The translations under genes were made by a program, and so were the position numbers. Source: Macrostomum lignano (Eukaryota). Taken from it: DNA of 64,000 nucleotides. The notes under the pieces were generated by a model that saw nothing but the letters and a program-made list of their open reading frames with translations, was not told the origin of the DNA and did not search any database. Each line of letters opens with the position of its first letter. Within the stretch, counting starts at the first letter, position 1. Below are positions 11,508 to 64,000 of the stretch, piece by piece. The stretch lies in contig NIVC01002544.1 of the NCBI GenBank assembly GCA_002269645.1, positions 62,001 through 126,000 on the forward strand, in the 5' to 3' direction.

Positions 11508-12296
11508 TAAGCAGTCTACCTTTAAAATTCCTTGGCCATAGTAGGGATTAGAACATTGGCACTTTGCTATTAAACCACAACCTAAGCTACTAGTTCTTTA
11601 TCTAGGGTAGGGCCTTTAAGAAGGTAAGGTCTGATCCCCTGCCTAGATTCCCCTTCTATCTTGATATTAGTACCTCTGGCCTTGGCTATAGCTCTATAAG
11701 CTATTATTCCCTAGGTTATATCACAATTAAGTATGATTTTCCTAAGCTAATACTAGCATATAAATAAGCATATTTAATATATCAGCTTATATATTATATT
11801 CCAATTCAGGGCTCATTGTTAGTTTCTTGTTTGTAAAACATTTTGTTCTATTCTTTATTATTGAAAGCCCTTTAAAATCAGGTTAGATGGCTACATAAAG
11901 CCAAATTGCATTAACAAAGATTAGAAACTTTTAAAATGCTTGAATCTTGGGATCCTAGCCCAATTTGTTGGGATCCTAGGATTAGCAAAGTCCAAGATAT
12001 CCCAATCCCAAGAATCCCAAGATTTTGTATTTCCTAATTGCCATTCATTAGATAAAATACTTATAATTATATAGTATTAGGCCTACAAATTATAATAGAT
12101 TATAATGGCAGTTTTTAGGCTTAGATAAACAATATCTTATTTGTCAATATCTATATATAAATTGCATTATAAGTTTAATAACAGCGAGTAATGAATAAAA
12201 GATGAAACATTAACCAAGCTAAAGGACAAATTATTTATTGAGGCCTTGTTAATTAGTCTACTCTCTCAAATAAATCTTATCTCAATAGTCACATAC

Positions 12297-37159: not shown

Positions 37160-39382
37160 ATGAAGCTCCAATTAGCAGGACTGATCTTCATTTTTATCTT
37201 GCAAGGATCGGCCGCTGACAATTCTGACACGAGTGAGTAACTGACTTTCTTGGTCTGACAATGAGTCATCGAAATCTCCTGATACGAGTACGAGCGTAGA
37301 TACCGTGGTATCATTGCAGGCGAGTTCCCTATTCGAAGGAGCCGCGTGCTGAGCACCTGGCAGTCGTCTTTTGGCGACGGCCAGACCTGCTTCTTCAACA
37401 GAAGCCAGACAGAGGAGGCCTCAGTTGTCAGTGACAAGCAGAAAAGCTACCGGTTCTTTCACAGCAAAGGCAAGAGCCAAGCTGACGGCGGGTTTCACTG
37501 GTTCGCAGTGCAGCTGAATGAGCCAGTGCTGATCAGCTCTGTGACTGTGAAGGGCAGAGAGGGTGAGTCAGTCACTGTCTTTCATACTCGGCAATTTGCT
37601 GATACTCCTAAATTGGGAAAATTTCACTTCAGACGGAGTTCAATACACCTACAACCGAGTGATCGACATTGAAATTTGGACATCGAGCTGGAGCAGGCGG
37701 GTGTTCTCCGGCGATGAGCACTGCACTTCAAGAAGCATGAGCGGGCAGTTCAATGATTCACTGCCAAAATGGACACTTTGCGGTGTGATTAACAGCTCTC
37801 TGGAAAGCATCACTCGTGGTGAACTTCTCACTGTGTCCTGCGAGAATGGGGTGGGTTCTGTCAATAATGCAGGCTAAATTGCTGCCAAACTGCAACTACA
37901 GTAGCTGAACTGCTTTCAGACATCCAAGCCAGCGCATCACCTGCTGCTAAGGAAGGACGTGTCAAGCAAGGAACCGGACACAGATGACGATGATGTCATG
38001 AGCTTTGCGGATCTCAGACTGCAGGTTAGGCGACCTAAAAACCCGCCAGGTAAACTAATGACTGAAATTATTCTCTCTTGGTTTTAATATAAAATCTCTC
38101 AGTCATTCACAACAGTCTCAGTGATTTCCCAGTCATTCACAACAGTCTTAGTGATTTCTCAGTCATTCACAACAGTCTCAGTGACCTCTCATTCATTCAC
38201 AACAGTCTCAGTGATTTCTCATTCACTCACAACAGTCTCAGTGACCTCTCATTCACTCACAACAGTCTCAATGACCTCCCATTCATTCACAACAGTCTCA
38301 GTGACCTCCCATTCATTCACAACAGTCTCAGTGACCTCCCATTCATTCACAACAGTCTTAGTGACCTCTCATTCACTCACACAACAGTCTCAGTGACCTC
38401 TCATTCACTCACAACAGTCTCAGTGATATCTCATTCATTCACAACAGTCTTAGTGATTTCTCAGCCATTCACAACAGTCTCAGTGACCTCTCATTCATTC
38501 ACAACAGTCTCGGTGACCTCCCATTCATTCACAACAGTCTTAGTGATATCTCATTCACTCACAACAGTCTCAGTGACCTCTCATTCATTCACAACAGTCT
38601 CAGTGACCTCTCATTCACTCTCTCTCGCACCTGCAGCCTCATCGCCGAACTCAGCCAGCAACGCAACCTTCTCAGCAACTGTGTCGGCCCTCGTATTTGT
38701 TTTAACCGCCCTAATCTGCGGCGTCGCTCTGGTCAGTAACTGGTCAATTTGATTTTTTTTTGACAGGTAAGAGAATAACCGAATTTCGAATTCCAGCTGA
38801 AGCTGAAACTGAAGAGCAGACAGTTGCAGTCCTCAAGTCCCGAAGCAAAGCTGAGCAATGTGCCAGATAATCCGGCTGGCGTTGCTAAGGCAGTGCGCAA
38901 GGTGAGAGGCATCTGACCCCTGTACAGAATACTGCTGTGATGGCTCATGCAGGAGCAGGGAAGCTCAGTGGTACACGATTCCCCGCATTCATTTGGGCAT
39001 TGTGCTCAAAAATAGGCCATTGGGTTTTCATGCATGCACAGACTGTACATGCCTGATGATTACAGTCAGGGCCGCTGTACACCCCGCGTGAGCGTGTGTG
39101 TGAGTGCCTGCTCCTGCGAATATTGAAACTTCGAATGCTCAACAACTGATGAGCAATGATGAATTGATGATGAAATCCGAGCCGGCTCCACCGATTTCAG
39201 ACCGATTTCAAACTTACTGATTTCAGACGCTGCGACCGCGCGTCACCGCCCGCAGCTGCGAGCCCGAGTGCAGCTACCTGTCGGTGAATCCCAACGCCGA
39301 GCCCGCCGACAACTCGGACAGGAATTCGGACACCGCAAGCGACTGCACCGTCTATTTGGAAATTGTGGCCGATGCCAACTAG
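37160..39382 (+). CDS. Receptor gene A: signal peptide, F-type-lectin-like domain, short stalk, TM, tail with two Tyr motifs
   Basis: Phase-consistent exons 37160-37232 (MKLQLAGLIFIFIL), 37320-37562, 37633-37850, 37920-38049, 38637-38731 (TM), 38797-38901 (LKLKLKSR), 39227-39382 (CSYLSV...CTVYLEIVADAN stop). Confidence 0.75.
38097..38620. repeat. 30-bp minisatellite in the gene A stalk intron
   Basis: Unit CATTCATTCACAACAGTCTCAGTGACCTCT, about 17 copies; reads HSFTTVSVTS; 2-nt insertion near 38380. Confidence 0.9.
38955..39130 (+). mobile_element. Second SINE-like family, internally deleted copy
   Basis: AGCTCAGTGGTAC head remnant; GCATTCATTTGGGCATTGTGCTCAAAA; TGTACATGCCTGAT...GGCCGCTGTACA. 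Confidence 0.55.
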
Positions 39383-39595
39383 CGAGCTGCTTCAATGATC
39401 ATCAGATTCTTCACCTTGCATGCACTGCATCTGTGTACAGGGCACCTGTTCTTGAGTGCGAGCTGAAATTTGTTTTAATGAACTCAAGCAATTGTTCAGT
39501 TTCAATGGTTAATACTCGTATTCAGCACAAATAAATCTTTGAATTTCAAAATAAACGCTGACCTCTCGATGTCCATTGCCGAGCACCGTCGCTTC

Positions 39596-40660
39596 AATCA
39601 GTCAGTCAGTCAGTCAGTCAGTCAGTCAGTCAGTCAGTCAGTCAGTCAGTCAGTCAGTCAGTCAGTCAGTCAGTCAGTCAGTCAGTCAGTCAGTCAGTCA
39701 GTCAGTCAGTCAGTCAGTCAGTCAGTCAGTCAGTCAGTCAGTCAGTCAGTCAGTCAGTCAGTCAGTCAGTCAGTCAGTCAGTCAGTCAGTCAGTCAGTCA
39801 GTCAGTCAGTCAGTCAGTCAGTCAGTCAGTCAGTCAGTCAGTCAGTCAGTCAGTCAGTCAGTCAGTCAGTCAGTCAGTCAGTCAGTCAGTCAGTCAGTCA
39901 GTCAGTCAGTCAGTCAGTCAGTCAGTCAGTCAGTCAGTCAGTCAGTCAGTCAGTCAGTCAGTCAGTCAGTCAGTCAGTCAGTCAGTCAGTCAGTCAGTCA
40001 GTCAGTCAGTCAGTCAGTCAGTCAGTCAGTCAGTCAGTCAGTCAGTCAGTCAGTCAGTCAGTCAGTCAGTCAGTCAGTCAGTCAGTCAGTCAGTCAGTCA
40101 GTCAGTCAGTCAGTCAGTCAGTCAGTCAGTCAGTCAGTCAGTCAGTCAGTCAGTCAGTCAGTCAGTCAGTCAGTCAGTCAGTCAGTCAGTCAGTCAGTCA
40201 GTCAGTCAGTCAGTCAGTCAGTCAGTCAGTCAGTCAGTCAGTCAGTCAGTCAGTCAGTCAGTCAGTCAGTCAGTCAGTCAGTCAGTCAGTCAGTCAGTCA
40301 GTCAGTCAGTCAGTCAGTCAGTCAGTCAGTCAGTCAGTCAGTCAGTCAGTCAGTCAGTCATAGTCACAGTCAGTCACAGTCACAGTCACAGTCAGTCACA
40401 GTCACAGTCACAGTCACAGTCACAGTCAGTCACAGTCACAGTCACAGTCATAGTCACAGTCACAGTCATAATCACAGTCACAGTCATAGTCACAGTCACA
40501 GTCAGTCACAGTCACAGTCACAGTCAGTCACAGTCACAGTCAATCAGTCACAGTCACAGTCACAGTCACAGTCACAGTCACAGTCACAGTCACAGTCACA
40601 GTCACAGTCACAGTCACAGTCACAGTCACAGTCAGTCACAGTCACAGTCAGTCAGTCAGT
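39596..40660. repeat. (CAGT)n microsatellite followed by (CACAGT)n
   Basis: Pure CAGT to about 40360, then CACAGT-type units. Confidence 0.98.
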
Positions 40661-41034
40661 CACCCAGGTGCGAATTTTATTTATTGTGAATTGAATCAGC
40701 AAATGTTTAAATGCTGGCAACGCGGATAAACTTACTGAATATAATTTCAGCATTTTAGTTATGAATATTAGTAGAAAACATCATTAATACCGAATTAAGT
40801 CAGAAATTAAAAATTGTCAAACAGCATCATTAGTTAAAATTGAAAGCTCCGACACTCTGAATAAACATAAAGGTGAACGCGCAACATTGCACAATGCCAA
40901 CCTGTCCGCTCATTTTGCATCTTGATTAGAGCTGTAACAGTGGGGAGGGCAAAGTGTGAAATAAATTACAGCTGACAGATACACAGCCTGCAGAATACAC
41001 AGCATATCATTGCCGGTGCCTTGGCAAAGTCGTC

Positions 41035-45040
<4,006 letters not shown>

Positions 45041-45252
45041 CATGATCAACTGCTCAAACTATAATCAATATTTTATTATTAGATAGAATTCAATATGTAA
45101 ATTTAGCCATTGCCAGTTCATATTGTAAGAATTTCAGAGTTAAAGCAGTCGTATGCATGAGTGAATTACAGGAATTGAAGTATTTAAATGGCGCTGTAAA
45201 TAAAATGCAAGAGAGTTTAAACTCCAAAGAAGCAACGGCTATTAATGCGTCT

Positions 45253-45462
<210 letters not shown>

Positions 45463-45725
45463 CAAATATTACGAATTATTTACGAAACTTTTCTTAAATT
45501 CAACATTTGAAATGACACACAAACAGGCTATATTTAACACATAAGATAAGATAAACCAAGTGTTGATGGGGGTGATGTTGCTGGCTTATTTATAAAATAC
45601 AAAACTATAATTTTAAATATCACTTGCGAATTTGGGTTTTAAACAGAAACATATTTCCCGAAGTTAAACATTTCAAACTGAAAAAGTTTATATAATCTAC
45701 GGCTCGTATTCAAACATGCCAAGCA

Positions 45726-48700
45726 ATGGAGGTCTGGTTCGCAATGGCAGACCTGTTGCTGCTGCTGCTGCTGCTGCTGCTGGTCCAGACAGCCGCGCAT
45801 GCTGAAGTTGGAGCAAACTGTGAGTTCTGCATGAGCAATGAATGTCAGCATGAATAAAAAGAATGTAAGTGCTCAATCTGTGCTCATTATTGCAGGCGAG
45901 TTCCCCATTCGCAGGAGCCGCGTGCTGAGCTCCTGGCAGTCGTCTTTTGGCGACGGCCAAACTTGCTTTTACAACAGAAGCCACACTGATGAGGAATCCG
46001 TGCTCAAAAACAAAACCTTTAGCTACCGGTTCTTCCACAGCGCTGGCCAGAGCTCAGCAGACGGCGGGTTTCACTGGTTTGCAGTGCAGCTGAATGAGCC
46101 AGTGCTCATCAGATCTGTGACTGTGAAGGGCAGAGAGGGTGAGTCACTCACTCAAATGCGTGCTCCAAGTCTGCTGTCTCTGCTCACGGTGCTCTCGCAT
46201 TCCATATGGTGCATCGAAAGTCTTTAAAAGAGCCAGAGGCATTGTGATCTGGACATCAGACAGCAGCAGCCAGCTGTTCTCAGGAGATCACTGCAGTTCA
46301 AGGAGCATGAGCAGCCAGTTCAATGCATCACTGCATCTCTGGAGACGGTGCGGGCTGACTGAGGGCGGCCCAAGAATTTCCGCTGGTGAAAATTTCACAG
46401 TGGATTGCATGGCTGAGGTGAATACATTTCAAATTTAAACTGCCTGTATATATTTACTAGCAAACTCTATAATGATGGATAATAAATAATCTTATTAAGT
46501 AGAATAAACAACCTGCTGCAGAGTTGTTAGAAAGTTGTTTTTCAATAACAAATTCTCAGGTGAGGTACATTCTTCTTAGAAGAAGCATAACAAACGCGGA
46601 CGTCTCGAGCTCTCTTGACTACATGAGTTTCGCTGACCTCCGGCTTCAAAAGTTGCAGCTGAGTAAGTCACGACTGTGGTGATTGCAGCTGCTCAAATGT
46701 CAGAAATATCGTACCTGAACTGCTGCTACCTGTGAACAATTTTACGTTTTAGGGATCTCAGAAGCTCAACTCGTTGCGGAGAACTCCAGCTTCACAGTGA
46801 ATTGCTCATTGGGCTGCACAGACCAGTCAGATGCTGGCTTAGCAGCTCTGATGCAGCTCTGCTTTCCGAACGGCAGCTGCAATGCATCACGGGAGCTGCG
46901 GGTTCCCAGAGCGCAGCCTCAACACGCTGGAAGCTACACCTGCAGACTGGGCTCTGTGGAGATGCGCACTGCAGTCTCTGTGCTGTGTGAGTGCAGACTT
47001 GGCATGGGCTGGCAAGCCTGTCTCTGTGCTGTGTGAGTGCAGACTTGGCATAAGCTGGCAAGCCTGTCTCTGTGCTGTGTGAGTGCAGACTTGGCATGGG
47101 CTGGCAAGCCTGTCTCTGTGCTGTGTGAGTGCAGACTTGGCATGGGCTGGCAAGCCTGTCTCTGTGCTGTGTGAGTGCAGACTTGGCATGGGCTGGCAAG
47201 CATGTCTCTGTGCTGTGTGAGTGCAGACTTGGCATGGGCTGGCAAGCCTGTCTCTGTGCTGTGTGAGTGCAGACTTGGCATGGGCTGGCAAGCCTGTCTC
47301 TGTGCTGTGTGAGTGCAGACTTGGCATGGGCTGGCAAGCATGTCTCTGTGCTGTGTGAGTGCAGACTTGGCATAAGCTGGCAAGCATGTCTCTGTGCTGT
47401 GTGAGTGCAGACTTGGCATAAGCTGGCAAGCATGTCTCTGTGCTGTGTGAGTGCAGACTTGGCATAAGCTGGCAAGCCTGTCTCTGTGCTGTGAGTGCGT
47501 GACTGTGTGACTTGGGATGGGCTGTCAGGCATGTCACTTTCATTTTCTACTGACACATTTCTGTCAGATCCAAATCGATGCCTTTAATTTAATGATGGTG
47601 TCAAGTAATCCTGAGAAAAGCATATCTTGTCAATCTTTTATTCGTTATTGATAAATATGACGATTTTTATTTTGAATTCTAATTCGGTAACTTACTGACT
47701 TTTGCAGCAGTCTCCCCGCGTCAAGTTGTGATGAAGGGCTCCAAGCTCACTATGAGCTGCTCGCTGCACTGCAACGGCTCAGATCTGTGCTCAAACTCAA
47801 GCGGACTGCATCTCTGCTTGCTGAACGGCAGCTGCACAGGCAGTCACAGGATGGCCGTTGCTGTGGCGCAGCCTCTGCACTCTGGAAACTACACCTGCAG
47901 ACTGGGCTCTGTGGAGTCTCGAACTTCGGTCACCGTGCTGTGTGAGCTCTTTAAATTCTCTTCAAAAGTTTCTTATTACAGACAGGATATCACAGGTGGC
48001 TCAACATGCACTCAGATTTAATATTTTTCAGACCCCCATCGAGAGTGTCAGTGTCAGTGCTGAATTTCAACAGCTGTCAGAACCTGTCAGATGTCATCGT
48101 GCAGTTTACATCAACAGAGTCTGAGCCAATCTCCGAGCACAGATGCGGCGCAGAAGCTGCTGGAATTGAAATGCAGAATCTCACACTCATTCACCAGGTT
48201 GGTCTTAAATTCGTCAATCCAAAATTAACCTTTATTTGCTCAATTGACTGTGACGGGTGCGGGCTTGCAGAGCTCTAGCGAGAACGGAACCATCAGCCAG
48301 TGGGTCCCGGACTCGAGCCTGCAAAGCGGCGGTGTCATCTCCATAAAGTGCATCGCTCAGCAGCAGCTCCCGCAGCAGCTCGGCTTTCGGGTATTGAGTC
48401 AGGAGTCTGTGGAAGCCATCTGCACAGAACCGGAGATTTTGAGTTCCCTGTCCATTGCGATTGCCGCTGCCACAATTGGCGGTGCAGTCGCCCTGTCTGC
48501 TGTGTTGGTTGCGGTTGCGGCCGTGGTGAGAAACTGTTGGACACTTCGACCTTTATTCTTCCCTTAACTGCATGATTCACTGCTCAATGCTATTCATGTT
48601 GCAGCGGATTTCCAGGCGGTCTCGTTCCAGAAGTTCGCCATCTGCCAGGCTGAAGATCTACTCAATTGTGCAGGTCAACTCCATGATGATCCCGTACGAT

Positions 48701-51696
48701 GCGCAGCCGACAGATGCTGTGAGTGCCATGCGTTTTATTTTCTTTTTAAGAAATATTTGCAACCAGTCATTTAAAAAACTATTGAACTCAAATTTTGAAT
48801 TATTCCTGTTTGTGAGTTACACGAACTGTTACACAGTGTGAACAAAATTTTTATGGATATTTTTTGTTTTACATAAAAATTCTGCTAAATTTCTATCTCT
48901 ACTTTCAGTAACTGATACCTTATATCTAAAATGAGTTCCGAAAGATATAAACAAGTAACCGGACTTCATTGGGGGCAGAGAAGCTCAGCAGTAAACGCTG
49001 TTGGATCTATGAAGCTTGAACTTTTGTTGTTTGATTTGATTTTGATTTTCAAGTTGGAACTGCTCTCGTCGGCATTCCGAGTGTCATTAGTCAAGTTGGA
49101 ACTGCTCTCGTCGGCATTCCGAGTGTCAATAATCAAGTTGGAACTGCTCTCGTCGGCATTCCGAGTGTCATTAATCAAGTTGGAACTGCTCTCGTCGGCA
49201 TTCCGAGTGTCATTAGTCAAGTTGGAACTGCTCTCGTCGGCATTCCGAGTGTCATTAATCAAGTTGGAACTGCTCTCGTCGGCATTCCGAGTGTCATTAG
49301 TCAAGTTGGAACTGCTCTCGTCGGCATTCCGAGTGTCATTAGTCAAGTTGGAACTGCTCTCGTCGGCATTCCGAGTGTCATTAATCAAGTTGGAACTGCT
49401 CTCGTCGGCATTCCGAGTGTCAATAATCAAGTTGGAACTGCTCTCGTCGGCATTCCGAGTGTCATTAGTCAAGTTGGAACTGCTCTCGTCGGCATTCCGA
49501 GTGTCATTAGTCAAGTTGGAACTGCTCTCGTCGGCATTCCGAGTGTCATTAGTCAAGTTGGAACTGCTCTCGTCGGCATTACGAGTGTCATTAGTCAAGT
49601 TGGAACTGCTCTCGTCGGCATTCCGAGTGTCATTAGTCAAGTTGGAACTGCTCTCGTCGGCATTCCGAGTGTCATTAGTCAAGTTGGAACTGCTCTCGTC
49701 GGCATTCCGAGTGTCATTAGTCAAGTTGGAACTGCTCTCGTCGGCATTCCGAGTGTCATTAGTCAAGTTGGAACTGCTCTCGTCGGCATTCCGAGTGTCA
49801 ATAATCAAGTTGGAACTGCTCTCGTCGGCATTCCGAGTGTCATTAGTCAAGTTGGAACTGCTCTCGTCGGCATTCCGAGTGTCATTAGTCAAGTAGGAAC
49901 TGCTCTCGTCGGCATTCCGAGTGTCATTAGTCAAGTTGGAACTGCTCTCGTCGGCATTCCGAGTGTCATTAGTCAAGTTGGAACTGCTCTCGTCGGCATT
50001 CCGAGTGTCATTAGTCAAGTTGGAACTGCTCTCGTCGGCATTCCGAGTGTCATTAGTCAAGTTGGAACTGCTCTCGTCGGCATTCCGAGTGTCATTAGTC
50101 AAGTTGGAACTGCTCTCGTCGGCATTCCGAGTGTCATTAGTCAAGTTGGAACTGCTCTCGTCGGCATTCCGAGTGTCATTAGTCAAGTTGGAACTGCTCT
50201 CGTCGGCATTACGAGTGTCATTAGTCAAGTTGGAACTGCTCTCGTCGGCATTCCGAGTGTCATTAGTCAAGTTGGAACTGCTCTCGTCGGCATTCCGAGT
50301 GTCATTAGTCAAGTTGGAACTGCTCTCGTCGGCATTCCGAGTGTCATTAGTCAAGTTGGAACTGCTCTCGTTGGCATTCCGAGTGTCATTAGTCAAGTTG
50401 GAACTGCTCTCGTCGGCATTCCGAGTGTCAATAGTCAAGTTGGAACTGGCCTCGTGGGCATTCCAGGCGTCACGTCCGGTAGTAGATTAGTCCAGTTGTT
50501 GACTGGGCCACCCGCAGCTTGGGCTAGCCCCACCCCCAGCTTTGATGACACTTGCTGCGTTGGATATGGTCATCATGCGCACTTCATGAACTTCCGATCT
50601 GTTCCACAGCTTCAACTGCAGCGCCAGCGTACTCCCATGAGTGCAGCACTGCCTGTACTCAAGCACTCCTGGGCGGAGTTTGACTCCCCTCAACTCAACT
50701 CAAGAGGATGATGATGCTCAGGTTTCTCAGGCGCGGTTGAATCACCGTTCATAGCATATTTGACAAAGTCGTCATGAGTGAGAAGGAAGCCAGCGTTCTT
50801 CGTATCACGGCTTAGGACTTGAACGAATTGAAGCGCGGTCAGTGTTTGCTGTCGTACGCGTGACTTTGATTTAGCGGGTTGTCTTTGTTACAGCATCCGA
50901 GTACGCGAACATGCCAAATCGGTTCTGCACAATGTCCACGGCGAAGTTTGCTACTCCGTCCAAAAATAGCACCTCCGTTCTTGATGAGGCCAGTCACATA
51001 GAGTCAATAGTGTGTTTGGAGTCGACATTGGTTATGCCGATGACTTCGATCCGACAATGTCCACTGTCCAGAGTTCGTCCGAATCTCTCAGTTCCTTTTC
51101 AACTTTTTAATTTCTCATTGCTCTCTACGCTCGGGTTTGCTTGTACAGCAAGTATACCTAAGGCAAAAAATAATCAAACAACAAAAGTTCATGCTCGGCA
51201 GATTCAACAAACGCGTCCGACCCTCGCGACACGACCCCTTGCTTGGTGCGCGGCTGCATTCATTTAGGGCTTGTGCTCAAAATTGGCCAGGGGCTCAGGC
51301 TCGATTCACAGCCATGAGGGCCAACCCCCCCCCCCGGCACAGAGAGTGTACATGCCTGACGATTAGAAAGTCAGGCCGCTGTACACCCTGTGTGAGCGTG
51401 TGAGGGCGTGCCTGCATACAGTATTAAAGTAGGTGCTCATTAGTCAGTGGAATGGGCAGAATTGCCTTAACGCTGGTTGTGGGACGGTGGGTGTTTCTAC
51501 CCGGACCTACACAAGCACCGCACTGAAACATTTGCAGGCCTGCTGTTGCACGGAGGAGCTGCCAGAGTGCAGCTACTTAACAATAATCCCACCTGGAGGT
51601 CAGGCAGAGGCCACCACAGCCGATTTGCAGCACTCTGCCAGCGAATGCACCGAGTTTATTGAGATTCTGGCTGATGGAGAGATTGAAGACTCATAA
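45726..51696 (+). CDS. Receptor gene C: SP, F-type-lectin-like domain, 2 Ig, membrane-proximal domain, TM, Tyr-motif tail
   Basis: Exons 45726-45819 (poly-Leu signal peptide), 45896-46138, 46206 or 46221-46417, 46560-46662, Ig 46753-46986, 47708-47941, 48016-48197, TM 48271-48525, 48605-48718, 51538-51696 (CSYLTI...CTEFIEILADG). Two acceptors differ from those of the paralogues. Confidence 0.65.
46974..47496 (+). repeat. 46-bp tandem duplication of an exon end plus splice donor, 11 copies
   Basis: Unit GTCTCTGTGCTGT|GTGAGTGCAGACTTGGCATGGGCTGGCAAGCCT begins inside the Ig exon. Confidence 0.92.
49049..50455. repeat. 42-bp minisatellite, about 33 copies
   Basis: Unit TCAAGTTGGAACTGCTCTCGTCGGCATTCCGAGTGTCATTAG. 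Confidence 0.97.
51255..51520 (+). mobile_element. Second SINE-like family, copy with conserved central hairpin
   Basis: Shares TTCATTT(A/G)GG..., GTGTACATGCCTGAC...GGCCGCTGTACAC and GTGTGAG.GTGTG blocks with copies at about 38955-39130 (+), 54460-54630 (-) and 60055-60395 (+); tRNA-like A/B boxes in the 54.6 and 60.06 kb heads. Confidence 0.65.
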
Positions 51697-52093: not shown

Positions 52094-52690
<597 letters not shown>

Positions 52691-52993: not shown

Positions 52994-55900
52994 ATGGCAG
53001 CATTTGAACTCATGGTGGTTGTATTGTTTCTGGCACTGCACCGAACAGGAGCGACCGAAGACTGTGAGTTCGATGACGTGTTTTCAAAAATTTCAAAATA
53101 TTTTTTTCCGCAGAAGGGGGAGGGCGCAGGAGGGCATGTCCACCCAGTAAAAGCTATGGGGGGCATGCTAATGCTTTGCCCCTCCCGCGACACTTGGTGA
53201 CCCGTCATGGAAATCAAAAATTTTGTTTTAGGGTGTTAAAATATAGCGCCTGCAGCGCCAAAATGAGGCTCTCGGCGCCAAAATGAGACCCTCGGCGCCA
53301 AAATGAGACCCTCGGCGCCAAAATGGGTGCCTGTCTGCGGCGCCAAAATGAGTGCCTACGGCGGAAAACAGGGTGCCTGCGGCGCCAAAATGAGTGCCTG
53401 CGGTGCCAAAATGAGTGCCTGCGGTGCCAAAATGAGTGCCCGCGGCGCCAAAATGAGTGCCCGCGGCGCCAAAATGAGTGTCCGCGGCGCCAAAATGAGT
53501 GCCCGCGGCGCCAAAATGAGTGCTCGCGGCGCCAAAATGAGTGCCTGCGGCGCCAAAATGAATGCTAACAGCACGTATTTCCATAATAATGTTGGAATGT
53601 ATTCTTATGTTTTAGAAATTTAGTCATGGGAGCTATTGACTTACCATAAAAACCATGGCGACGCCCCTGTGCAGGTGAGCTCCCGATTCGCAGGAGCCGC
53701 GTGCTGAGCACCTGGCAGTCGTCGTTTGGCGACGGTCCGACCTGCTTCTACAACAGAAATCAAACTGATGAAGATGCAGCAATGCAGGAAACAAAAGCTA
53801 CCTGCAAATTCTTTCACAGCGCTGACAAGAGCTCAGCAGACGGCGGGTTTCACTGGTTCGCTGTGCAGCTGAATGAGACAGTGCTCATCAGATCTGTGAC
53901 TGTGAAGGCTCGGCAAGGTAAAATGATAGGATTGATAATTTCGTATTTGTGAAGTGAAGATTTAGTATTTACTGTTTGTCGCATCGAATCTTCAGTCACA
54001 ATTTCGCACCTGTCTGACCACCTGCGGGCGAGCAGCATTGAAATATTCACATCCGGAAACAGCAGCGAGATGTTCTCCGGTGTTGACCACTGCATTTCAA
54101 ACAGCATGAGCAGGCAGTTCAACGACTCGCGTGAGCAGTGGAAATTGTGCGGCAATACAAAAAGCAAGCAGAAAGGGAACATCGCTGCTGGGGAAAATAT
54201 CACTGTGAGCTGTGTGGCAGAGGTGAGTGCTGAGTCAAACTCTCGTGAGTCATTTTAATTTTTCTGCAATGCAAAATGAAGCTTATGCATCAGTTTTAAC
54301 CAAAAAATTTCAGGTTCGACATCTGCTGCTGCGGAGACCCCAGTCGGCTGAGGGGCAGAACTACATGAACTTCGCCGACTTGAGACTTCAGACTGTGTCG
54401 CTGAGTAGGTTGATGGATGAAGATGAATGGAGATGAAGATGGATGAATTTTTGATTTTGACTTTGACTTTCCAATCGTCAGGCATGTACACTCTCTGTTC
54501 CTTGGGGGGGTGGTACTCATGGGTTGCGAATCTGAAGTCAGAAGCCTCAAATGAAAGTGGCAGCGCACGGAATCGAACCAGGGGTCGCGGCGCGAGAGGC
54601 AGATGCCTTTACCGCTGAGCTCCTGGGGCTCTCTACGAGCGCATGCTATTTAACACCCAGAACTAATTGTCCTTGATCCACAACAAGCCTGAAGATACAC
54701 CTCGGAGTTGATTATCAGCTTTATATTTCTTTTATACACCCAGTGGGCAGCTAATTATGATTTGCAATTAGGCCATATTTTATATTGAAAAGTCACCAAA
54801 ATGCTGACTGTATTTTTCAGAATTAGAGAGTCCTCAAGTGGTTGCTGTGGGCTCCAATTTCACGGTGAGCTGCTGGCTGCAGCAGTGCAACGGCTCAAAG
54901 CTGAGTACGAACTCAAGCGAGCTGCAGCTCTGCATTCCAAATGGAACCTGCGTCTCAAATTTGAAATATTTTATTGCCGATGTGCAGCCTGAGCACTCGG
55001 GCAGCTACTCCTGCAAGTTCGGCTCGGTTTCCAAGTCAACTGAAGTAGCTGTTCTGGGTAAGAGCGCTTTAACTCAGCACTCTGTGTGACTCATGGATGA
55101 AGGAATCTTACATGGATGATGGACTCCTTCATCCATGGTGTGACCGCAATAAGAGCGCATTTCAATTGACCTGCACCTGCAGCATAGGCTCGATAAATAA
55201 ATCGTCTTCAATCGCAGTCCTATGTGAGAGACTGCTCTATGCTCACATTCTTTCCAACATGCAATTTAAACCTGAGCTTGGATAAAGACGTATGAGCATG
55301 CCTGCATAAGCATGAGCAAAACCGACTCCAGAGCCATCTCAGTTTTCGATACGAGCTACTCCACTTTTAAGCTAGCGCCAGATACTCCACTTCTGAATTG
55401 CAGCCTCATCTCCAGACCAAGTGGTGGCGGACAGCGGCAACATTTCCATCAGCTGCTCCCTGAACTTGAACTTGTCGGATTCAAACATGAAGTCAAGCCG
55501 GCTGCAGCTGTGCACTCCAAGCGGGGACTGCCGACACACCCAGCAGATCCACATTGCTGATGTGAAACCTCGGCATTCTGGAATTTATGCTTGCAAATTC
55601 GGCAATGCGTCGAAGTCACTTCAAGTCGCTGTTCTGAGTGAGTCATTGATTAGTTGCCTTAAAATGCTTACACTAAAGATGGCGAGAATGCATTCCGATA
55701 GGACGGAGATTTTATTCCACCAAAGAATGTAGGGATTTCAATAGAATAGAAATAGGCTCAGCTTGACTACATTTATGAATCTTAACTTTATTAAATTTCC
55801 AGCTTCATCTCCAAGCCAGAATGTTTCCGAAAACGCAAGCTTCACCGTGAGCTGCTCGCTGCACTGCGGAAATGCATCGCAATGCTCAGATCGCTTATTG

Positions 55901-58900
55901 GGTGGCGACCTCCGGCTGTGCCCTCCGAATGGGAGCTGCCTGACAAATTCAAGTCTGCAAGTGGACAGAGCTCAGGCAATGCACTCCGGAGTTTATACTT
56001 GCAGATATGACGTCATTGAGATCGAGACAGAAGTCTTTGTTCTTTGTAAGTAGAAAGTAGGCTGCCTTCAGAATCTTGTTGCTCAGTGTTGCTCAGTGTT
56101 GCTCAATGCTGCTCAGTGTTGCTCAGCGTTGCTCAATGTTGCTCAATGTTGCTCAGTGTTGTTCAATGTTGCTCAGTGTTGCTCAGTGTTGCTTAATGTT
56201 GCTCAATGTTGCTCAGTGTTGCTCAGTGTTGCTCAGTGTTGCTCAGTGTTGCTCAGTGTTGCTCAGTGTTGCTCAGTGTTGCTTAATGTTGCTCAATGTT
56301 GCTCAGTGTTGCTCAGTGTTGCTCAGTGTTGCTCAGTGTTGCTCAATGTTGCTCAATGTTGCTCAGTGTAGCTCAATGTTGCTCAGTGTTGCTCAATGTT
56401 GCTCAGTGTTGCTCAGTGTTGCTCAATGTTGCTCAATGTTGCTCAGTGTTGCTCAGTGTTGCTTAATGTTGCTCGGTGTTGCTCAGTGTTGCTCAGTGTT
56501 GCTCAGTGTTGCTCAGTGTTGCTCAGTGTTGCTCAGTGTTGCTCAGTGTTGCTCAATGCTGCTCAGTGTTGCTCAGTGTTGCTCAGTGTTGCTCAGTGTT
56601 GCTCAGTGTTGCTCAATGCTGCTCAGTGTTTCTCAATGTTGCTCAATGCTGCTCAGTGTTGCTCAGTGTTGCTCAATGTTGCTCAGTGTTGCTCAGTGTT
56701 GCTCAGTGTTGCTCAATGTTGCTCAGTGTTGCTCAGTGTTGCTCAGTGTTGCTCAGTGTTGCTCAGTGTTGCTCAGTGTTGCTCAATGCTGCTCAGTGTT
56801 GCTCAGTGTTGCTCAGTGTTGCTCAATGTTGCTCAGTGTTGCTCAATTTCACAATCGATTAACTCACCTTCATCAGGCGAGTTCCCAGTTCGGCGAAGTC
56901 GCATTCTGAGTTCGTGGCAGTCATCATTCGACGATGGTCCGACGTGTTTCCACAGCAGGAATCAGGCAGACGAAGCCTCCATCATCAGCAACAGGCAAAC
57001 CAGCTACAAGTTCTTCCACAGCGCCAACAGAAGCCAAGCAGACGGCGGGTTTCACTGGTTCGCCGTGCAGCTGAATGAGCCAGTGATCATCAGATCTGTG
57101 ACTGTGAAGGGCAGAGAGGGTGAGTGAGGACAACTTATTTATACGCTTCTTCTGTAAGGACTGATTCTCCTGTTCTGAAGATTCCACTGTACAGTAATAC
57201 GTTTCAACGACATCATAAGTAACTCCTCATCTTATTTTCAGACGGTGTGACAAGTACTTACAATCGAGCAAAGGACATTGAAATATTTACCTCCAACTCT
57301 AGCAGCTCCCTGATCCATGGGGATAACTGCAACACCAAAAAAATGAGCTTTCAGTTTAAAAATTCGATGCACCATTGGAGGCCATGCGGCGTGACTGATA
57401 AGCAGGGAGACGTCGCAGATGGGGAAATGTTTCACGTGAAATGCGTTGCTGAGGTAAAAATTTGGAAAAAAAAATTTGGAAATTCTACAGTGATTTGAGT
57501 ACCATTGTCTTTCCAAGCAACCTATGAGCATTTAAACTGCAGGTCCGAAGTCTACTCCTGCGAAGAAACGTGTCTAAAGACACGGACGGGCACATGAGCT
57601 TTGCTGACCTGAGGCTTCAGACTGGGAAAATCAGTAAGATTTTTGAGCTGTCATGAGTTGTGTCCAAGTCCTGGTGTGTGTGCTAAGTTGAAGCGCTAGC
57701 AGTACATGCAAAATGACTGAAGTTCGTCTCAAAAGTGTCTCAAATCATTGCATTTCAGAAGTCGAGAGCCCCAAGGCGGTGCTGCAGCACTCAGCATTCT
57801 CAGTGCGCTGCCTGTTGGACTGCAACGGTCGAACCGAATACTCACCGAAGTTGGAGCTCTGCCTTCCAAACGGAAGCTGCGTTGGACAAGCTGAAGCCGT
57901 CATTCACAGGGCGCAGCTGTGGCACCATGGAAACTACACGTGCAAGTTGGGCAGCTCGCAGAGCTCAAAGTTCTTAACGGTGTTTTGTAAGTTTTCATCA
58001 ATAGAAACATGACTTGGTGTTGCATCAGTACTGAATCATTCAAAAGATTCCATAAGTTGATTCTGGACTCTGGATGACAAATCGATTGCTTAGCATTTGA
58101 TAATTAGCGTTGCACTGGGACTCCTCTCGTACACAGATTGGAAGAAAATTCTCGCAAGGAGTCGTGCCAGCTTAAGGCTGGCTGATGGCAGTAGAAGCCA
58201 TCAATGGCAGCAGATCAGGCCGCATTTCAGGTGACTTCCCTATCCGGAGGAGCCGCATATCGAGTGCTTGGCAGTCGTCTGCATTCGAAGACACCTGTTT
58301 TAATAAAAGAACTGCTGAAGCGGAAGTGAACTTGGAACCATGGAAGTATTTTCACAGTAGTCGCAGTAGCTCAGCAGACGGCGGGTTTCACTGGTTCGCA
58401 GTGAAGCTGGATGAGCCAGTGCTCGTCAGATCGGTCACTGTGAAGAGCAGAAACAGTGAGTGACTTTTCACTTCTTCATGAGTATTAATCATACCTAAAT
58501 CTGAGTCCGAATCGTTTTTGTCTGGAGTCTATTAGGTTAAAAAACTTCTCAATAAGGTGTTGTCCTGTCCGGCGCAATGGAAAAGCGATGCCAGGTTTTT
58601 ATTAGTTTTTAGGTCCGTTGCAAATTTATGTTGCTCGTACTAGTGAAGTAGCCTCTTCAAATTCAAGAAAGCAGAATCAAAGTTGGTCTGCAGAGTAAAT
58701 TAAATGCTTTTTTACCCAGCATCACTTTTGCAAACACACCAAATCCATGAGCAGTCGCGGTTTAATTCCAGACGCAGACTACACGAGGGCAAAGGGGATC
58801 GAGATCTTTACGTCAAACAGCAGCGATGAAATATTTTCCGGAAACCACTGCGCCTCGAAGAGCATGAGTGCTCAGTTCAATTGCTCATTTCATCTCTGGA

Positions 58901-61900
58901 GTCTGTGTGGGCAGACAGAGAAGCAAGGAGCAATTCAACCTGGCGAAAATTTTACTGTGAGCTGCGTTGCCGAAGTGAGTGACAGCGTTGCGAAGAGATT
59001 TATCGATTGCGAGTATTATCAACTCGCAAGACTTACATGTAGAATTGTCAGAGCTGTTCAGCACCCATCAAGACCATGAATAGTGGCGGGGTACGAGGTC
59101 AACGCGAACTACCAAGAAACTTTCCAGTGGTGGATGGAGACAATGGAGTGGCCTAGAGAGTCTGGGGGAGATGGGGATAGCTACAAGAGTCAGTCAGAGT
59201 TAGACTACATCCACAGGTGCTTCGCTCGTTTGGCCCATCATGAAATTGGAGTTTACAAGAATCTGCTCACAATGGGTGCTGATTCTCAGTTGAGTACCTC
59301 TACTCCAAAGTTCGCCTACTAAACGACTCATAGCAGCTGGGCAGGTGGGAAGGCAGAAGCCATTTCTTCCGACCAGTGAGATTGACCTGAGCACTCTACA
59401 AGCTTGAGCAGGAGGGTTGGTAGCTACTCCATCTCCCTCCCTGCAGAAGAAAGCGCAGTTGTCTGCATTGCCGACCGTAATGGGATTTGGCGGATCATTC
59501 TGACTCAATGAAATTCCATAATGGGACTCGGTAATGAGGTTCTGGAATTAAAAAATCGATGTGGTCTAGGATCTGCTCTAAAAAATAGCGACTTCCGGCC
59601 CATGGCTGACCATCACTGTTCCGACTTACCTTTTCAGGTCTGGCAGCTGCTTCTGAAAAGAAGTGCCTACATTGAGAACAATGAGTACATGAACTTCATG
59701 GACCTAACACTCCAAACTGTGCCGATTAGTAAGTTAACCATGATTTCTATGCTTCACGATTCACTTATACATTAAAAAATGTTCTAAAACTTTTAGAAGT
59801 GCACAGTCCTCAGTTGGTGGCGCAGAACTCCAGCTTCACTGTGCGCTGCGCCATCAAATGCGATGAAGACGGAGCTGATGTGGCCTCCAACTCGTCTGAG
59901 CTGCGGCTCTGCTCTCCGAACGGAAGCTGCTCAGAAGGATCAACAGTTCGAATCGACAGTGCTCAGCCCCTGCATTCTGGGAAATATACTTGCAAACTGG
60001 GCTCGTTCGAGAGGTCAGCAACAGTCGCAGTGCTGTGTGAGTTCATCTAGTTCGACTGACATCAGTGGTACAGCGCGGTGCTCTGATGTGCCAGTGGCCC
60101 AGGCTCGATTCCAAGTGCAGTCACACTAATTTGAGGCTAAATTGGAATCTCGGCTTGGCTCTGCTCGTGCAATTAACGCAGTGAAGTGTACATGCCTAAC
60201 GATAAATAAAGTTGGGGCCGCTGTACACTCCTGTGTGAGTGTGTGCCTATGCGTATGACTGCGTACGTATCTGCGCGCTTCTGTGCCTGCTCAGGGGAGT
60301 CGGCGGAATGGGCAGTGATGCCTCTCGCCGGTTGTGTGACAATGTCGCTTAAAGTGCGCCAGGGTGCACAGAGCCCCTGTCTCTAACAATAATAACTTAG
60401 TTTGGCTAAAAAGTAGTAATATCCTTGACTATCCGTTATTAAATTCCAAATAGCCATTGTGCCAAGTGGTAAAGCGTCTGACTCTTGCATCAAAGTCCCT
60501 GGTTCGATTCCGTGGATATTTTTGGGGTTAGGATATTTTCAGCAGGACGAACGAAAAAGAGCAAAACTATAATTTCAAGTGCCGATGATGATTTCAGCAT
60601 CCTCAGAACACCAGCTGGTGGCAGAGAACTCAAACTTTTCCGTGAGCTGCTCGCTGCACTGCAACGGCTCTGAGCAGTGCCCCGACTCCAGCAAGCTGCA
60701 GCTCTGCTTGCCAAACGGCACCTGCATTCGGGAAAGCCAGCTCAATGTTGCCGGAGCGACTCCGCTGCACTCTGGAGTTTACAGGTGCAGAGCCGGGCCT
60801 GCCAATGCGTCAACTCTCGTGACTGTGCTGGGTGAGTCCCGTTTACCCTGGCCTTGCCTCCTAGCTGATAATATGTCTTCATTTAGTTTTCCAACGTGTG
60901 TCTTTCAATTTTGCTGATGTCAGCCTCTCTCGAACTCCAGCATCTTCACCTCATCAAGTGGTGGCCGAAAACTCGAGCCTGATATTGAACTGCTCGCTGC
61001 ATTGTGGGCTCGAAGCAGTCGAATGCGAAGACTCAGCTGCTCATGGAAAAATGAAAATTTGCCGTCCCAACAACGGCAGTTGCAGCTCAGATCGATCGTT
61101 TCAAATTTCTGCAGCAACTCCGGCTCAAGCTGGAACCTACGCGTGCAAGATCGGCTCGGCTGAGGCACCGACCTCAGTAGCTGTGCTCTGTGAGTTTGCT
61201 GTCACTTCTCGTGACTTTTGGAATGTCATGCTCAATGGTTGTCACGTACATTAGAGGCCGTTAGTTTTCCTAAGCATCACTTAGCGCTTGAGATTTTTTC
61301 ATTCTAGTGGCACTCACTGGATAGTAGGAAATAAAGTTCTACGAGGGGATGTCTGGAAAAGTTCTGACACTTTTAATCCCAGAGCAGAAACGGAACCAGC
61401 TGAAATTTTTATGGCGGCACATTTTGGAGGCCACTCCATCGAAAGGTTATGCTTGAAAAAGCACCACAATGCCACTGATGGTCTTACAAGAACTGAAAGT
61501 CGCAACAAATATAAAGAGATGGTTTGTCTTTGAAAAACCAATTTTGGTTCTCATATTCTCATTATATTATCAATATGCGCTTGTTCGAACCGGTGCACAT
61601 CCTCGTTAATTCAGCTGTGCATTTATAACAATCGATCGATCAATATTTCAATTCGGAATGCCGCAAAATTCTGTTCACTGCGGCCTATCTGGTTCAAATT
61701 TCCAGTCAGCTCAAAGTCGCTTCAAAGTCCGTCAGTCAAGCGGTGCCAGGACTCCGCAATAGCACCGACGTAGTAGCCCGAATATTCGATGTAGTCGTTC
61801 AGGCCGTCGAACGTAGGCGAGCAAGAGACGTAGCTCTCGGCCACGGCGTCATCTGGTTGGCCAGTCAGCCACAGGCTGCCGTCGATGCTGGAGTTGCAGC

Positions 61901-64000
61901 TGGTCCAGAACCAGCTTCCGCTCGGCTCCTCGCTGCCGGGCAGCTGCCAGCCACCGAGCATCACGCTGGTGTCGGTTGTTAGGCGCCAAACTCCGGATAT
62001 GTTGCAGCTCCTCCAGGTCGCTTACGTCAGCCATGATGACGAGTCCAGGCTCCGCATCGATGTCAGTCTTGGCTACGAGCCAGTCGTGAATTCCAGAGTA
62101 CATCTTGTACTTTGTGCCGCACAGGTCGTCAGAGAATCCGGCAGGGCACAGAGCACCGGGCGGCAGTCCCGGCTGCTGCCTCACGAACACCGGCGCCCTG
62201 CGAGTGCAGCCGCAGTCTCTCACGCGCTTGCTGCACCTGTTGAACACGAACAGCTGGCACGGACCGTCGGCCAGGCTGAACGCCTGACAGTCGAGCTTTG
62301 AGTCGCACAGGCTGGCGCAGTCAATCTTTGATGTGGCATCGCTGCGAGTCTGCACAAACTCTGGCCTGATGCACTGAAACTTGTCGAGCTCCTGGTATCG
62401 AGCTGCCGAGGCCGCAGTCAGCAGCGCAGCCGCTGCAACAAGGCCCAGAAGATGCGGCATCCCTGGTTAAGGCTATGCGAAGAAATTCGCCTGACTTCGA
62501 GGCTTAAGTAGGCAAAAATTTCCGCCAGTTGAGTTCTCCGTTCGATACTTTCTTAGAAATGCTTTGATCCAGGCGGCACTTCCCTTTGAGTCAAGACAGA
62601 GAAGAGAGCTGCATCCATTAGCATTCGAATTGCTGGATTGTCCTCTCTTGGCCATCCATCCATTGTATTGAAAGCAATGCTTTTAGGCATGGTGAGGAAC
62701 AGTCAGCGATTGGAGTGGCTTTTATGCTGTTACTCGCGTGAACTGCTCACTAAATCGGTAATTCAATATCGATTATTTTAAAAGCATCCTTATTATTGGT
62801 CTAATGGTTGATATGGTTCGATTGGTTTCAAAAGACATTTGAGGCTTTCTGAATCGACAAGTAGCCAAGAGCACATGATGCAGCTTTGAGCAATGCACCA
62901 GTCTTGACGATCGGCAATGGTCTCTCTTACTGGTTACCTAACAGTATCATTGGGCCATCCATACACTACATGACGTACGACTCGCAAAGTACTCGAAAAA
63001 TCGAGCTTAGCGCAGTTGTTAGTAATGCTAATATTATTAATAGATTACACCTACCCTAATGGGCAGATGAAGGCTGCGTACGGCTGTTCAGTCCAAGGAT
63101 TGGGGGTGGGTGGCCACACACCCTCAATTCCTATCAAGACACTAGCTAATGCTGGTACCCATTTTACAGCTGGGTGAACTGAAGCAATGCAGCGTTGGGT
63201 GTCTTGTTCAAGGACACAGTTTGGTCTTATGAGACAAAAAATGTCAGAACTTGCCGGACATCACTCATATTTCAATAGAGGGCTCTTATCTGCTCAAAAA
63301 GGTAATTCTATGAGAAATTTTTTCAGAGAAATTACCTACGGGTTGGAAAGTCACAATACAAGCATTATTAGTCCAAGACTGATGATGACACAGGCACAGG
63401 TTCAACCCTAAAGCCTGGAAACCAGGTCATTTATTAAAACTTAATGACTTCTTGGAAAAACTTGTCGAATGCCTAAACATTTCAGCGATTACTTCAAATA
63501 AATCCGTGGCTGTCAACTCAAGCTTCTCCGTTCGGTGCATTCGGCACTGCGACAGAACTTGTCCTGTGCTGAATTCGAGCAAACTGCAGCTCTGCTTGCC
63601 AAACGGCACCTGCTCAGCCAATGACGAACTGCATATCAGCAGTGCCCAGCCTCATGAGCACTCTGGAAACTACACTTGCCAAATGGATGCTGTTCGAACA
63701 TCAGCCTCTGTTACCGTACTTTGTAAGTCGACTGTTATTGAGAAATTTCGCCTTCAGATGGAACAGAGACACGTTGAAAAGTCCCTCTCTCTCTGAACAC
63801 ACTGTAGACCCGCCATCAAGCGTATCAGTCTCTGCCCCGAACTCAAGCAGCTGCGACAGTCCGTCCGACATCGTCGTGCACTTTACATCCTCCGCATCTC
63901 AGCCTGCACCCGAGCACAGTTGCAGTGCTGCTGCTGACATGGCTGCAATGGAAAACTTCACCCGCCTTTCAGAAACGAGTTTTACTAAAGTCAATAACGG
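52994..64000 (+). CDS. Receptor gene D (3'-truncated by the window): SP, Lec, Ig x3, Lec, Ig, Lec, Ig x4, membrane-proximal domain
   Basis: Exons 52994-53063, 53675-53917, 53996-54222, 54314-54404, 54821-55057, 55404-55637, 55803-56045, 56877-57119, 57242-57453, 57543-57633, 57759-57986, 58231-58455, 58772-58974, 59638-59728, 59797-60036, 60598-60831, 60941-61189, 63486-63722, 63808 onward. All phases are compatible and no further signal-peptide exon was found between modules. Confidence 0.7.
53270..53562. repeat. 21-bp minisatellite (gene D intron 1)
   Basis: Unit GCGGCGCCAAAATGAGTGCC(C/T), about 13 copies. Confidence 0.9.
54460..54630 (-). mobile_element. Second SINE-like family, 3'-truncated copy
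   Basis: Minus strand GGAGCTCAGCGGTAAAGGC...GGTTCGATTCCG...TTCATTTGAGGCT...GAGAGTGTACATGCCTGACGATT. Confidence 0.6.
55150..55225 (+). pseudogene. Relic 3' half of an Ig exon inside a gene D intron
   Basis: Reads TCTCSIGSINKSSSIAVL then T|GTGAGA, matching the family Ig exon end; the 5' half is absent. Confidence 0.5.
56085..56846. repeat. 10-bp minisatellite, about 76 copies
   Basis: Unit GCTCA(G/A)TGTT. Confidence 0.97.
60055..60395 (+). mobile_element. Second SINE-like family, near full-length copy
   Basis: CATCAGTGGTACAGCG...GGCTCGATTCC head; central hairpin at 60186-60228; tail ending AACAATAATAAC. Confidence 0.6.
61722..62460 (-). pseudogene. Intronless secreted PAN/apple plus C-type lectin gene, antisense and nested in a gene D intron; one frameshift (pseudogene or sequence error)
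   Basis: Signal peptide MPHLLGLVAAAALLTAASA; PAN-like CASLCDS...CQAFS....CQL; CTL CPAGF...KYK...W...EE...I; after a +1 shift near 61975, VMLGG...W.W...W..GQPDD...GLND. Confidence 0.7.
63023..63218 (-). mobile_element. 5'-truncated copy of the CORE-like SINE
   Basis: Homologous to 44430-44620 (TACACC..CCCTAAT, GAAGGCTG.GTACGGCTGTTCAGT, CCCATTTTA.CAGCTG.GTGAACTGAAGCAAT, CAAGGACAC). Confidence 0.75.

Follow-up and report, generated by a model that had tools for sequence, protein, structure and literature searches.

Three genes lying in tandem on the + strand of a 64,000-nucleotide stretch of DNA, here called the window and placed by sequence match on contig NIVC01002544.1 of the Macrostomum lignano assembly GCA_002269645.1, encode type I membrane receptors that end in a tail with two conserved blocks. 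The genes are called A, B and C; block 1 is proximal and is built around an invariant tyrosine, and block 2 is distal and carries a tyrosine in A and a phenylalanine in B and C. An earlier note on this DNA had read the two blocks as the tail of phosphotyrosine signaling receptors whose paralogues differ in output, as in paired immune receptors, and had compared them to tails with a proximal YxxV/L motif and a distal immunoreceptor tyrosine-based switch motif (ITSM), the latter perfect in A and altered in B and C. We find that both blocks are encoded in genuine terminal exons, that they have been maintained by selection, and that the ITSM belongs to A and its near-identical copies. By sequence, the receptors are a lineage-specific lectin-like/immunoglobulin (Ig) family with a bipartite tail motif of its own, for which we tentatively favor a phosphotyrosine function at block 1.

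Terminal exons and their two conserved blocks

All six tail peptides quoted in the earlier note are present on the + strand at the positions listed in Table 1, and the interval that it marked coincides with exon boundaries, as 39227 is the first base of the tail exon of A and 51696 is the last base of the stop codon of C. Each tail open reading frame (ORF) starts in phase 0 directly behind a ...CAG acceptor rich in pyrimidines and runs to a stop codon, and an AATAAA sequence lies 150 to 230 nt 3′ of each. The ORF track does obscure these exons, as had been noted: A appears as a 32-aa piece that lacks block 1 and B appears as 47 aa, both shorter than the 60-aa default of what is a bacterial-type ORF list. 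Joining of the tail exons to the transmembrane (TM) exons was also borne out by existing gene models. For gene A, seven GT-AG exons assembled from the window give exactly the 339 residues of the NCBI product, the annotation of which derives from a genome-guided RNA-seq transcriptome (PMC5730564). For gene C, the last three exons yield UniProt P0014 exactly, with GT-AG sites, and for gene B, a B-like UniProt protein (P0015) joins the TM segment straight to the tail (...GLAIRL followed by AGPSRGVPDSDCSYLTV...CTEFLEIVADGD). The corresponding donor at 44049 and acceptor at 44905 form the top-scoring junction in the window; UniProt models of the P0014 and P0015 type were predicted computationally from the older ML2 assembly. 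We conclude that the three stretches are terminal coding exons. The tail is assigned to the cytoplasm because the proteins have signal peptides, their ectodomains carry many NxS/T sequons, and basic residues (LKLKLKSR, RISRRSRSR, and RKARSS in the family) follow directly after the TM segment; the juxtamembrane exon of gene A (38797-38901) is basic.

Comparison of the tails with one another by tblastn within the window gave E values of 1e-6 to 5e-8. A 48-position profile hidden Markov model of the A, B and C tails, searched with HMMER against 1.84 billion representative proteins, matched only five proteins at E≤0.001, all of them M. lignano members of this family (E of 6e-21 to 1.4e-8): an A-like variant (P0012), an A-B fusion (P0013), gene C (P0014), the B-like protein (P0015), and BOX15_Mlig029700 (P0016/P0019). 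The tail profile found no match among PDB sequences. A word-indexed search with the tail alignment missed even gene A's own protein, which is an effect of the index and not an absence. BOX15_Mlig029700 is a new, transcript-based paralogue with the same tail, and its locus (L003, on NIVC01000052.1) contains tail exons of this kind, which we call type 1, at 11465-11596 and 16262-16393. The motifs are therefore kept in further paralogues, a point on which the earlier note had staked its reading.

Six distinct tails were aligned, and C-S-Y-L, S-x-C-T and A-D are invariant among them. Block 1 has the consensus [DE]CSYL[ST][VI] and is followed by a variable linker of approximately 17 to 24 residues, and block 2 has the consensus S[DE]CT[EV][FY][LI][EK][IM][VL]AD and ends 2 to 6 residues from the C terminus. 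Among the A, B and C tails, synonymous divergence (dS) is saturated at 1.4 to 2.2, nonsynonymous divergence (dN) is 0.43 to 0.50, dN/dS is approximately 0.23 to 0.35, and synonymous changes such as CTG/TTA, ACC/ACT and GTG/GTA occur inside the blocks. Because dS is saturated, dN is lower, and the blocks themselves contain synonymous changes, we conclude that the blocks have been under long-term purifying selection and do not owe their likeness to recent gene conversion. Chance occurrence of the blocks is ruled out by their conservation at saturated dS.

The proximal tyrosine is present in 6/6 tails, and the distal aromatic residue varies by lineage: it is Tyr (TAT) in the A lineage and Phe in B (TTC), B-like, C (TTT), G (TTC) and H (TTC). 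The earlier note's "Tyr to Phe in B and C" was thus right as to the residue states, but the direction that it implied is not evident, as Phe is the commoner residue in the wider family. On a neighbor-joining tree of the N-terminal domains, a tree that is poorly resolved, uncertainly rooted and collapses in the bootstrap consensus, parsimony slightly favors an ancestral Phe, which needs a single Phe-to-Tyr change in the A lineage versus at least two Tyr-to-Phe changes otherwise. The "ITSM" of A may thus be a single TTT-to-TAT substitution in a block whose conservation has other reasons. Because block 2 is conserved with Phe, its core function cannot need phosphorylation, and the tyrosine of block 1 would be the functional tyrosine of the module.

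Other family members carry a second, tyrosine-rich tail, type 2, with the consensus [DE]YENSEYKLENA.G.Y (P0001-3, P0007, P0011 and L003:2003-2170), which includes YxN and does not fit the sorting consensus YxxΦ (Φ being L, I, V, M or F). The window contains no type-2 tail exon and no type-1 tail beyond those of A, B and C. All members whose 3′ end is known retain a tyrosine-bearing tail of one type or the other, and type-2-tail genes are interleaved with type-1 genes on the N-domain tree, which suggests shuffling of terminal exons or gene conversion. Positions 1-16400 of L003 form a second family cluster in which the two tail types are mixed.

Candidate functions of the tail

The tails were compared with known motif classes, and shuffled tails were used to gauge how readily each pattern arises. 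The ITSM consensus TxYxx[VI] is matched by gene A and its near-identical copies (TVYLEI), as the earlier note had claimed, and arises in 1.4% of shuffles of the A tail, but B, B-like, C, G and H read TEF[LI][EK][IM]. The ITSM is therefore not a property of the whole family, and the conservation of the distal block extends beyond the ITSM consensus to invariant S, C, T, A and D residues. The immunoreceptor tyrosine-based activation motif, defined as two Yxx[L/I] motifs 6 to 12 residues apart, was rejected, as the two tyrosine motifs of A (YLSV...YLEI) are 22 residues apart and the other tails have one Tyr. YxxΦ was taken as Y-x-x-[L/I/V/M/F] lying 7 or more residues away from the membrane in a cytoplasmic tail. 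A pattern like that of the LC3-interacting region (LIR), [DEST]x0-2[WFY]xx[LIV], is matched by both blocks in all tails and by 18 to 24% of shuffles. None of these motif classes accounts for the invariant Cys of the two blocks or for the closing A-D, and tail C also has a CCC run where its exon starts. Asp, Glu, Lys and Arg are absent from the TM helices of A, B and C.

The reading that we favor, with some reserve, is that block 1 recruits SH2 domain proteins through phosphotyrosine. The block-1 tyrosine, which lies in an acidic context, would be the regulated residue; a Src-type kinase would phosphorylate it upon ligand engagement, and an SH2 protein would read the product. Block 2 would serve for aromatic/aliphatic docking, for which Phe suffices and no phosphorylation is needed, and the distal tyrosine of gene A would be an optional second phosphotyrosine site that happens to fit TxYxxI. 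This reading is favored because the acidic context and the conserved residues upstream of the tyrosine are irrelevant to AP-2 binding, because type-2 tails also center on conserved tyrosines (YxN included) that misfit YxxΦ, and because SH2-containing kinases of the Src and Syk types exist in flatworms. SH2-based readers and writers are present in platyhelminths, an example being the Syk kinase SmTK4 of Schistosoma with its Src partners (PMC2820527). Type-2 tails moreover point to tyrosine chemistry as a theme of the family. Several observations weigh against the phosphotyrosine reading: the strict pattern of the immunoreceptor tyrosine-based inhibitory motif (ITIM), [S/I/V/L]-x-Y-x-x-[I/V/L], fails in all six tails, where Cys occupies position −2; YxxΦ is found in all six (as YLSV, YLTV or YLTI), such that a sorting signal fits equally well; the YxxΦ pattern itself is a cheap match that arises in 15 to 28% of shuffles of these tails; the distal residue is Phe in four of five lineages (B, B-like, C and G/H) and Tyr in A alone; and no SH2 or tyrosine motif explains the invariant A-D or the Cys that each block carries in 6/6 tails, in block 1 at −2 relative to its Tyr and in block 2 at −3 relative to its Tyr/Phe.

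The main alternative, possible but doubtful, is an endocytic or sorting module, in which block 1 would be an unphosphorylated YxxΦ signal read by the mu subunit of AP-2 or AP-1, block 2 would be a distal acidic-hydrophobic, dileucine-like ExxxI[VL] element, and the proteins would be endocytic lectin-type receptors. YxxΦ together with a distal acidic or dileucine signal occurs in the asialoglycoprotein receptor, the mannose-6-phosphate receptors and sortilin, and the flatworm proteins resemble these in their putative carbohydrate-binding-type ectodomain, short tail, YxxΦ and second hydrophobic motif near the C terminus. Sorting would also accommodate the acceptance of Phe in block 2, the E-x-x-x-[IM]-[VL] sequence found there in B, C, G and H, and the lack of a charged TM residue or a kinase-docking feature. 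There is no homology to the known sorting receptors, however; block 2 departs from the canonical [DE]xxxL[LI] and DxxLL signals; the E/D, C and S upstream of the tyrosine are conserved yet lie outside YxxΦ and are unneeded for mu-subunit binding; block 2 of A, when read as dileucine-like, has nothing acidic at −4; and the conserved tyrosines of the type-2 tails misfit YxxΦ. YxxΦ sorting and regulation by tyrosine phosphorylation are not mutually exclusive. If the sorting signal is true, the family would be one of lineage-specific endocytic lectin-like receptors, a result that is useful for annotation and otherwise ordinary.

We consider it improbable that the genes encode paired receptors of the immune type, with SH2 phosphatases or adaptors recruited by a proximal ITIM-like tyrosine and a distal ITSM and with the output switched by the Tyr-to-Phe difference in B and C. 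The fit of TVYLEI, the retention of T at −2 and I/M at +3 in all paralogues, the likeness of the distal block to the TEYSEI and TEYATI types of Siglecs and PD-1, and the membership of the genes in a clustered, diversifying Ig superfamily (IgSF) family all speak for it. Against it stand the confinement of Tyr to the A lineage, the parsimony result, the failure of the strict ITIM, and the absence of both a charged TM residue and a tail-less activating partner, which weakens the paired-receptor analogy of the earlier note. Its low standing follows from its dependence on one residue in one lineage together with the lack of paired-receptor hallmarks, and the canonical ITSM readers, SAP and EAT-2, are described from vertebrates. 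Another class of docking is quite unlikely: the blocks would be Atg8/LC3-interaction-like, or their cysteines would serve palmitoylation or an intermolecular zinc clasp like that of CD4/CD8 with Lck. Interchange of Y and F is typical of motifs that fill a hydrophobic pocket, the LIR-like pattern is matched throughout, and the invariant cysteines are otherwise unexplained by tyrosine-motif models, but the pattern is common by chance, position +3 of block 2 is Met in G, LIRs are unusual in plasma-membrane lectin or Ig receptors, and no partner is known.

The favored phosphotyrosine reading invites comparison with PD-1, PECAM-1, CD33-related Siglecs and the SLAM family, which likewise are type I proteins with Ig domains and a short tail that pairs a proximal Yxx[VIL] with a distal T-x-Y-x-x-[V/I]-like motif near the C terminus; TVYLEI of A fits the ITSM, and the flatworm TEF[IL][EK]I resembles TEYSEI or TEYATI. 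In contrast, the flatworm tails have no sequence homology to these tails (the tail profile found nothing in PDB and, among 1.84e9 proteins, family members only), have Cys at −2, Phe at the distal position in most cases, and extra invariant Cys, Ser and Ala-Asp, and stand behind an N-terminal domain that appears galactose-binding-like and not V-set. By analogy, and with a tail function that is predicted from sequence, they would at most work like the ITIM-plus-ITSM tails of PD-1, PECAM-1 and Siglecs. Among invertebrates, the closest parallel is FcoR of Botryllus schlosseri, clustered and copy-number-variable IgSF co-receptors with conserved tyrosine motifs, the paralogues and alleles of which differ by single substitutions in a motif or by swapped tail exons (PMC12582321). 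The flatworm clusters likewise mix two tail types, but Botryllus is a chordate, canonical ITIM/hemITAM motifs are a feature of FcoR and not of the flatworm tails, and the flatworm family has no known allorecognition or immune role.

A wider proposal, that a free-living flatworm independently evolved an immunoreceptor-like system of clustered, rapidly duplicating and lineage-specific lectin-like/Ig receptors in which interchangeable terminal exons of types 1 and 2 set phosphotyrosine/SH2 outputs and the distal Tyr/Phe tunes the signal, is speculative and carries a low probability; no such receptor family would have been proposed in Platyhelminthes before. If the phosphotyrosine module is true, these would be the first candidate immunoreceptor-type signaling receptors in a flatworm, and clustered IgSF families with swappable tyrosine-motif exons, as in vertebrates and Botryllus, would extend to a protostome. 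The natural Tyr/Phe difference between paralogues is a ready-made experiment, and transgenesis works in M. lignano. A literature search found no mention of these loci or of ITIM/ITSM receptors in flatworms.

Ectodomain, gene models and genomic setting

Family members share an architecture of signal peptide, N-terminal domain over three exons, zero to three Ig domains, membrane-proximal domain, TM segment, basic juxtamembrane exon and tail. The gene A model has no Ig exons or domains. The Pfam Ig_2 model scored 43.2 bits in B and 36.2 bits in C versus a cutoff of 27, and B and C are therefore members of the IgSF. The N-terminal domains all match F5_F8_type_C (PF00754) (8/8; best E of 5e-5), always below the gathering cutoff, and their sole PDB sequence matches are the fucolectins 3cqo and 1k12, at nonsignificant E values of 0.19 and 0.76 and in weak, local alignments with an uncertain register near the ligand His. 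An AF2 model of a member that consists of the N-terminal domain alone was of medium confidence (pLDDT 56, pTM 0.61) and retrieved in Foldseek only galactose-binding-like folds (CBM32, the EndoS carbohydrate-binding module and F-lectin; E of 3e-5 to 1e-3, TM score of 0.4 to 0.47 normalized by query); AF2 of full-length gene A was unusable (pLDDT 36). These likenesses to F-type lectins, discoidin domains and CBM32 suggest that the N-terminal domain is a divergent galactose-binding-like (discoidin/F-lectin-like) module, one that differs from the known families in its division over three exons and in having been found in M. lignano alone, and its sugar binding is putative.

Table 1. Positions of the receptor genes, their tail exons and related features. 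Numbering is that of the window except in the two L003 rows.
Feature	Position	Strand	Details
Gene A, BOX15_Mlig012084g1, PAA57031.1 (P0004)	37160-39382	+	339 aa; NCBI transcript-based model
Gene A exons	37160-37232, 37320-37562, 37633-37850, 37920-38049, 38637-38731 (TM), 38797-38901 (juxtamembrane), 39227-39382 (tail and stop)	+	GT-AG
Tail exon A, TLRPRVTARSCEPECSYLSV...SDCTVYLEIVADAN, stop	39227-39382	+	Block 1 ECSYLSV 39266-39286; block 2 SDCTVYLEIVAD 39338-39373
Conserved Cys codons, tail A	39269-39271, 39344-39346	+	
Gene B, model built in this analysis	41035-45040	+	616-aa type I protein; frame-consistent GT-AG junctions
Gene B signal peptide and lectin-like exons	41035-41098, 41229-41471, 41555-41754, 41824-41911	+	
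Gene B Ig exons	41997-42230, 42309-42539, 42618-42851	+	Three
Gene B exon	42937-43103	+	Between Ig and TM exons
Gene B membrane-proximal domain and TM exon	43794-44048	+	
Gene B candidate juxtamembrane exon, TSKRDTESSVEAVELKLVVAESSGMQHNDGSEAE	44719-44820	+	Phase 0/0; skipped in B-like P0015
Tail exon B, AGPRVPDSDCSYLTV...SDCTEFLKIVADGD, stop	44906-45040	+	Block 1 DCSYLTV 44930-44950; block 2 SDCTEFLKIVAD 44996-45031
Conserved Cys codons, tail B	44933-44935, 45002-45004	+	
Gene C, model	45726-51696	+	Type I protein; models of B and C each about 600 residues; GT-AG
Gene C signal peptide and lectin-like exons	45726-45819, 45896-46138, 46221-46417, 46560-46662	+	
Gene C Ig exons	46753-46986, 47708-47941	+	Two
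Gene C 3′ exons	48016-48197, 48271-48525 (TM), 48605-48718 (juxtamembrane), 51538-51696 (tail)	+	
Tail exon C, ACCCTEELPECSYLTI...SECTEFIEILADGEIEDS, stop	51538-51696	+	Block 1 ECSYLTI 51565-51585; block 2 SECTEFIEILAD 51640-51675
Conserved Cys codons, tail C	51568-51570, 51646-51648	+	
Modules D, E, F	D 52994-56046; E 56877-57987; F 58231 to window end	+	Further family modules
L003 type-2 tail	2003-2170		Ends ..EYENSEYKLENAAGVY
L003 degenerate type-2 tail	6053-6109		ENENSEYEPENATEVY
Satellite arrays	38096-38617, 39594-40662, 43125-43746, 45253-45462, 46974-47493, 49049-50464, 52094-52690, 56077-56845		

In all, six copies of the N-terminal domain, A to F, lie in tandem on the + strand of the window. 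The NCBI calls in this region are a kinase and gene A only; genes B and C have no NCBI annotation on the contig, D-E-F probably has none either, and the receptor family has no Pfam model. Searches with the gene B sequence and with an N-domain profile gave matches confined to M. lignano proteins. By sequence comparison, A, B and C are tandem paralogues in a family of type I membrane receptors that is specific to Macrostomum. Contig positions were not found for the paralogues known from UniProt only.

Modules D and E have no TM or tail exon within the window, and the TM and tail of F would lie beyond it because its membrane-proximal exon (63810-63983) is near the window end. An in-frame splice from an Ig exon to the lectin-like exon that follows it is possible across D, E and F (52994-64000, +): the D-to-E junction (56045 to 56877) and the E-to-F junction (57986 to 58231) each restore a codon for a conserved Cys (..VFVL-C-EFPVRR and ..LTVF-C-DFPIRR, respectively), and E and F are without a signal-peptide exon. 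D-E-F may be a single multimodule gene with three lectin-like domains.

Locus L001, taken from NIVC01002544.1, is identical to window positions 27160-49382. A second copy of the entire kinase-A-B-C region is present on NIVC01002925.1 (L002), at 95 to 99.6% identity with introns included; its gene A copy, Mlig012084g2, has three added residues (TEP) where the tail exon starts. The copy fits the redundancy for which the DV1 assembly is known and, because introns are as similar as the rest, is uninformative on selection. UniProt A0A1I8JLC6 (P0013) fuses the A tail, which ends ..CTVYLEI at a GT within the tail exon, to lectin-like exon 2 of B (39338-39361 joined to 41229 onward). The fusion is either a prediction artifact or polycistronic read-through; M. 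lignano has trans-spliced multigene precursors (PMC5730564).

A divergent tyrosine-kinase-like gene lies directly upstream of the receptor array (20118-28293, +; NCBI product of 1091 aa), with an N-lobe exon at 20118-20504, a C-lobe exon at 27691-28293 and the catalytic loop HCDLAARN. Between the two exons is a DIRS-like retrotransposon (20825-24528, +) with a SAP-domain ORF, a reverse transcriptase and a phage-integrase-type tyrosine recombinase. Two minus-strand family fragments lie between the kinase gene and gene A (29485-29245 and 35923-35761), one of them a piece of N-domain (78% identity) and the other resembling the membrane-proximal domain, and both are probably pseudogene remnants. 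Long micro- and minisatellite arrays occupy introns and intergenic spacers of the receptor array. A 30-bp repeat array (38096-38617) in the intron that precedes the TM exon of A is in frame (SVISHSFTTV repeats) and is skipped by the annotated transcript, and other units are a 42-bp minisatellite of 34 copies in the last intron of C (49049-50464), TCAG in 204 copies between A and B, and TAC in 70 copies between B and C.

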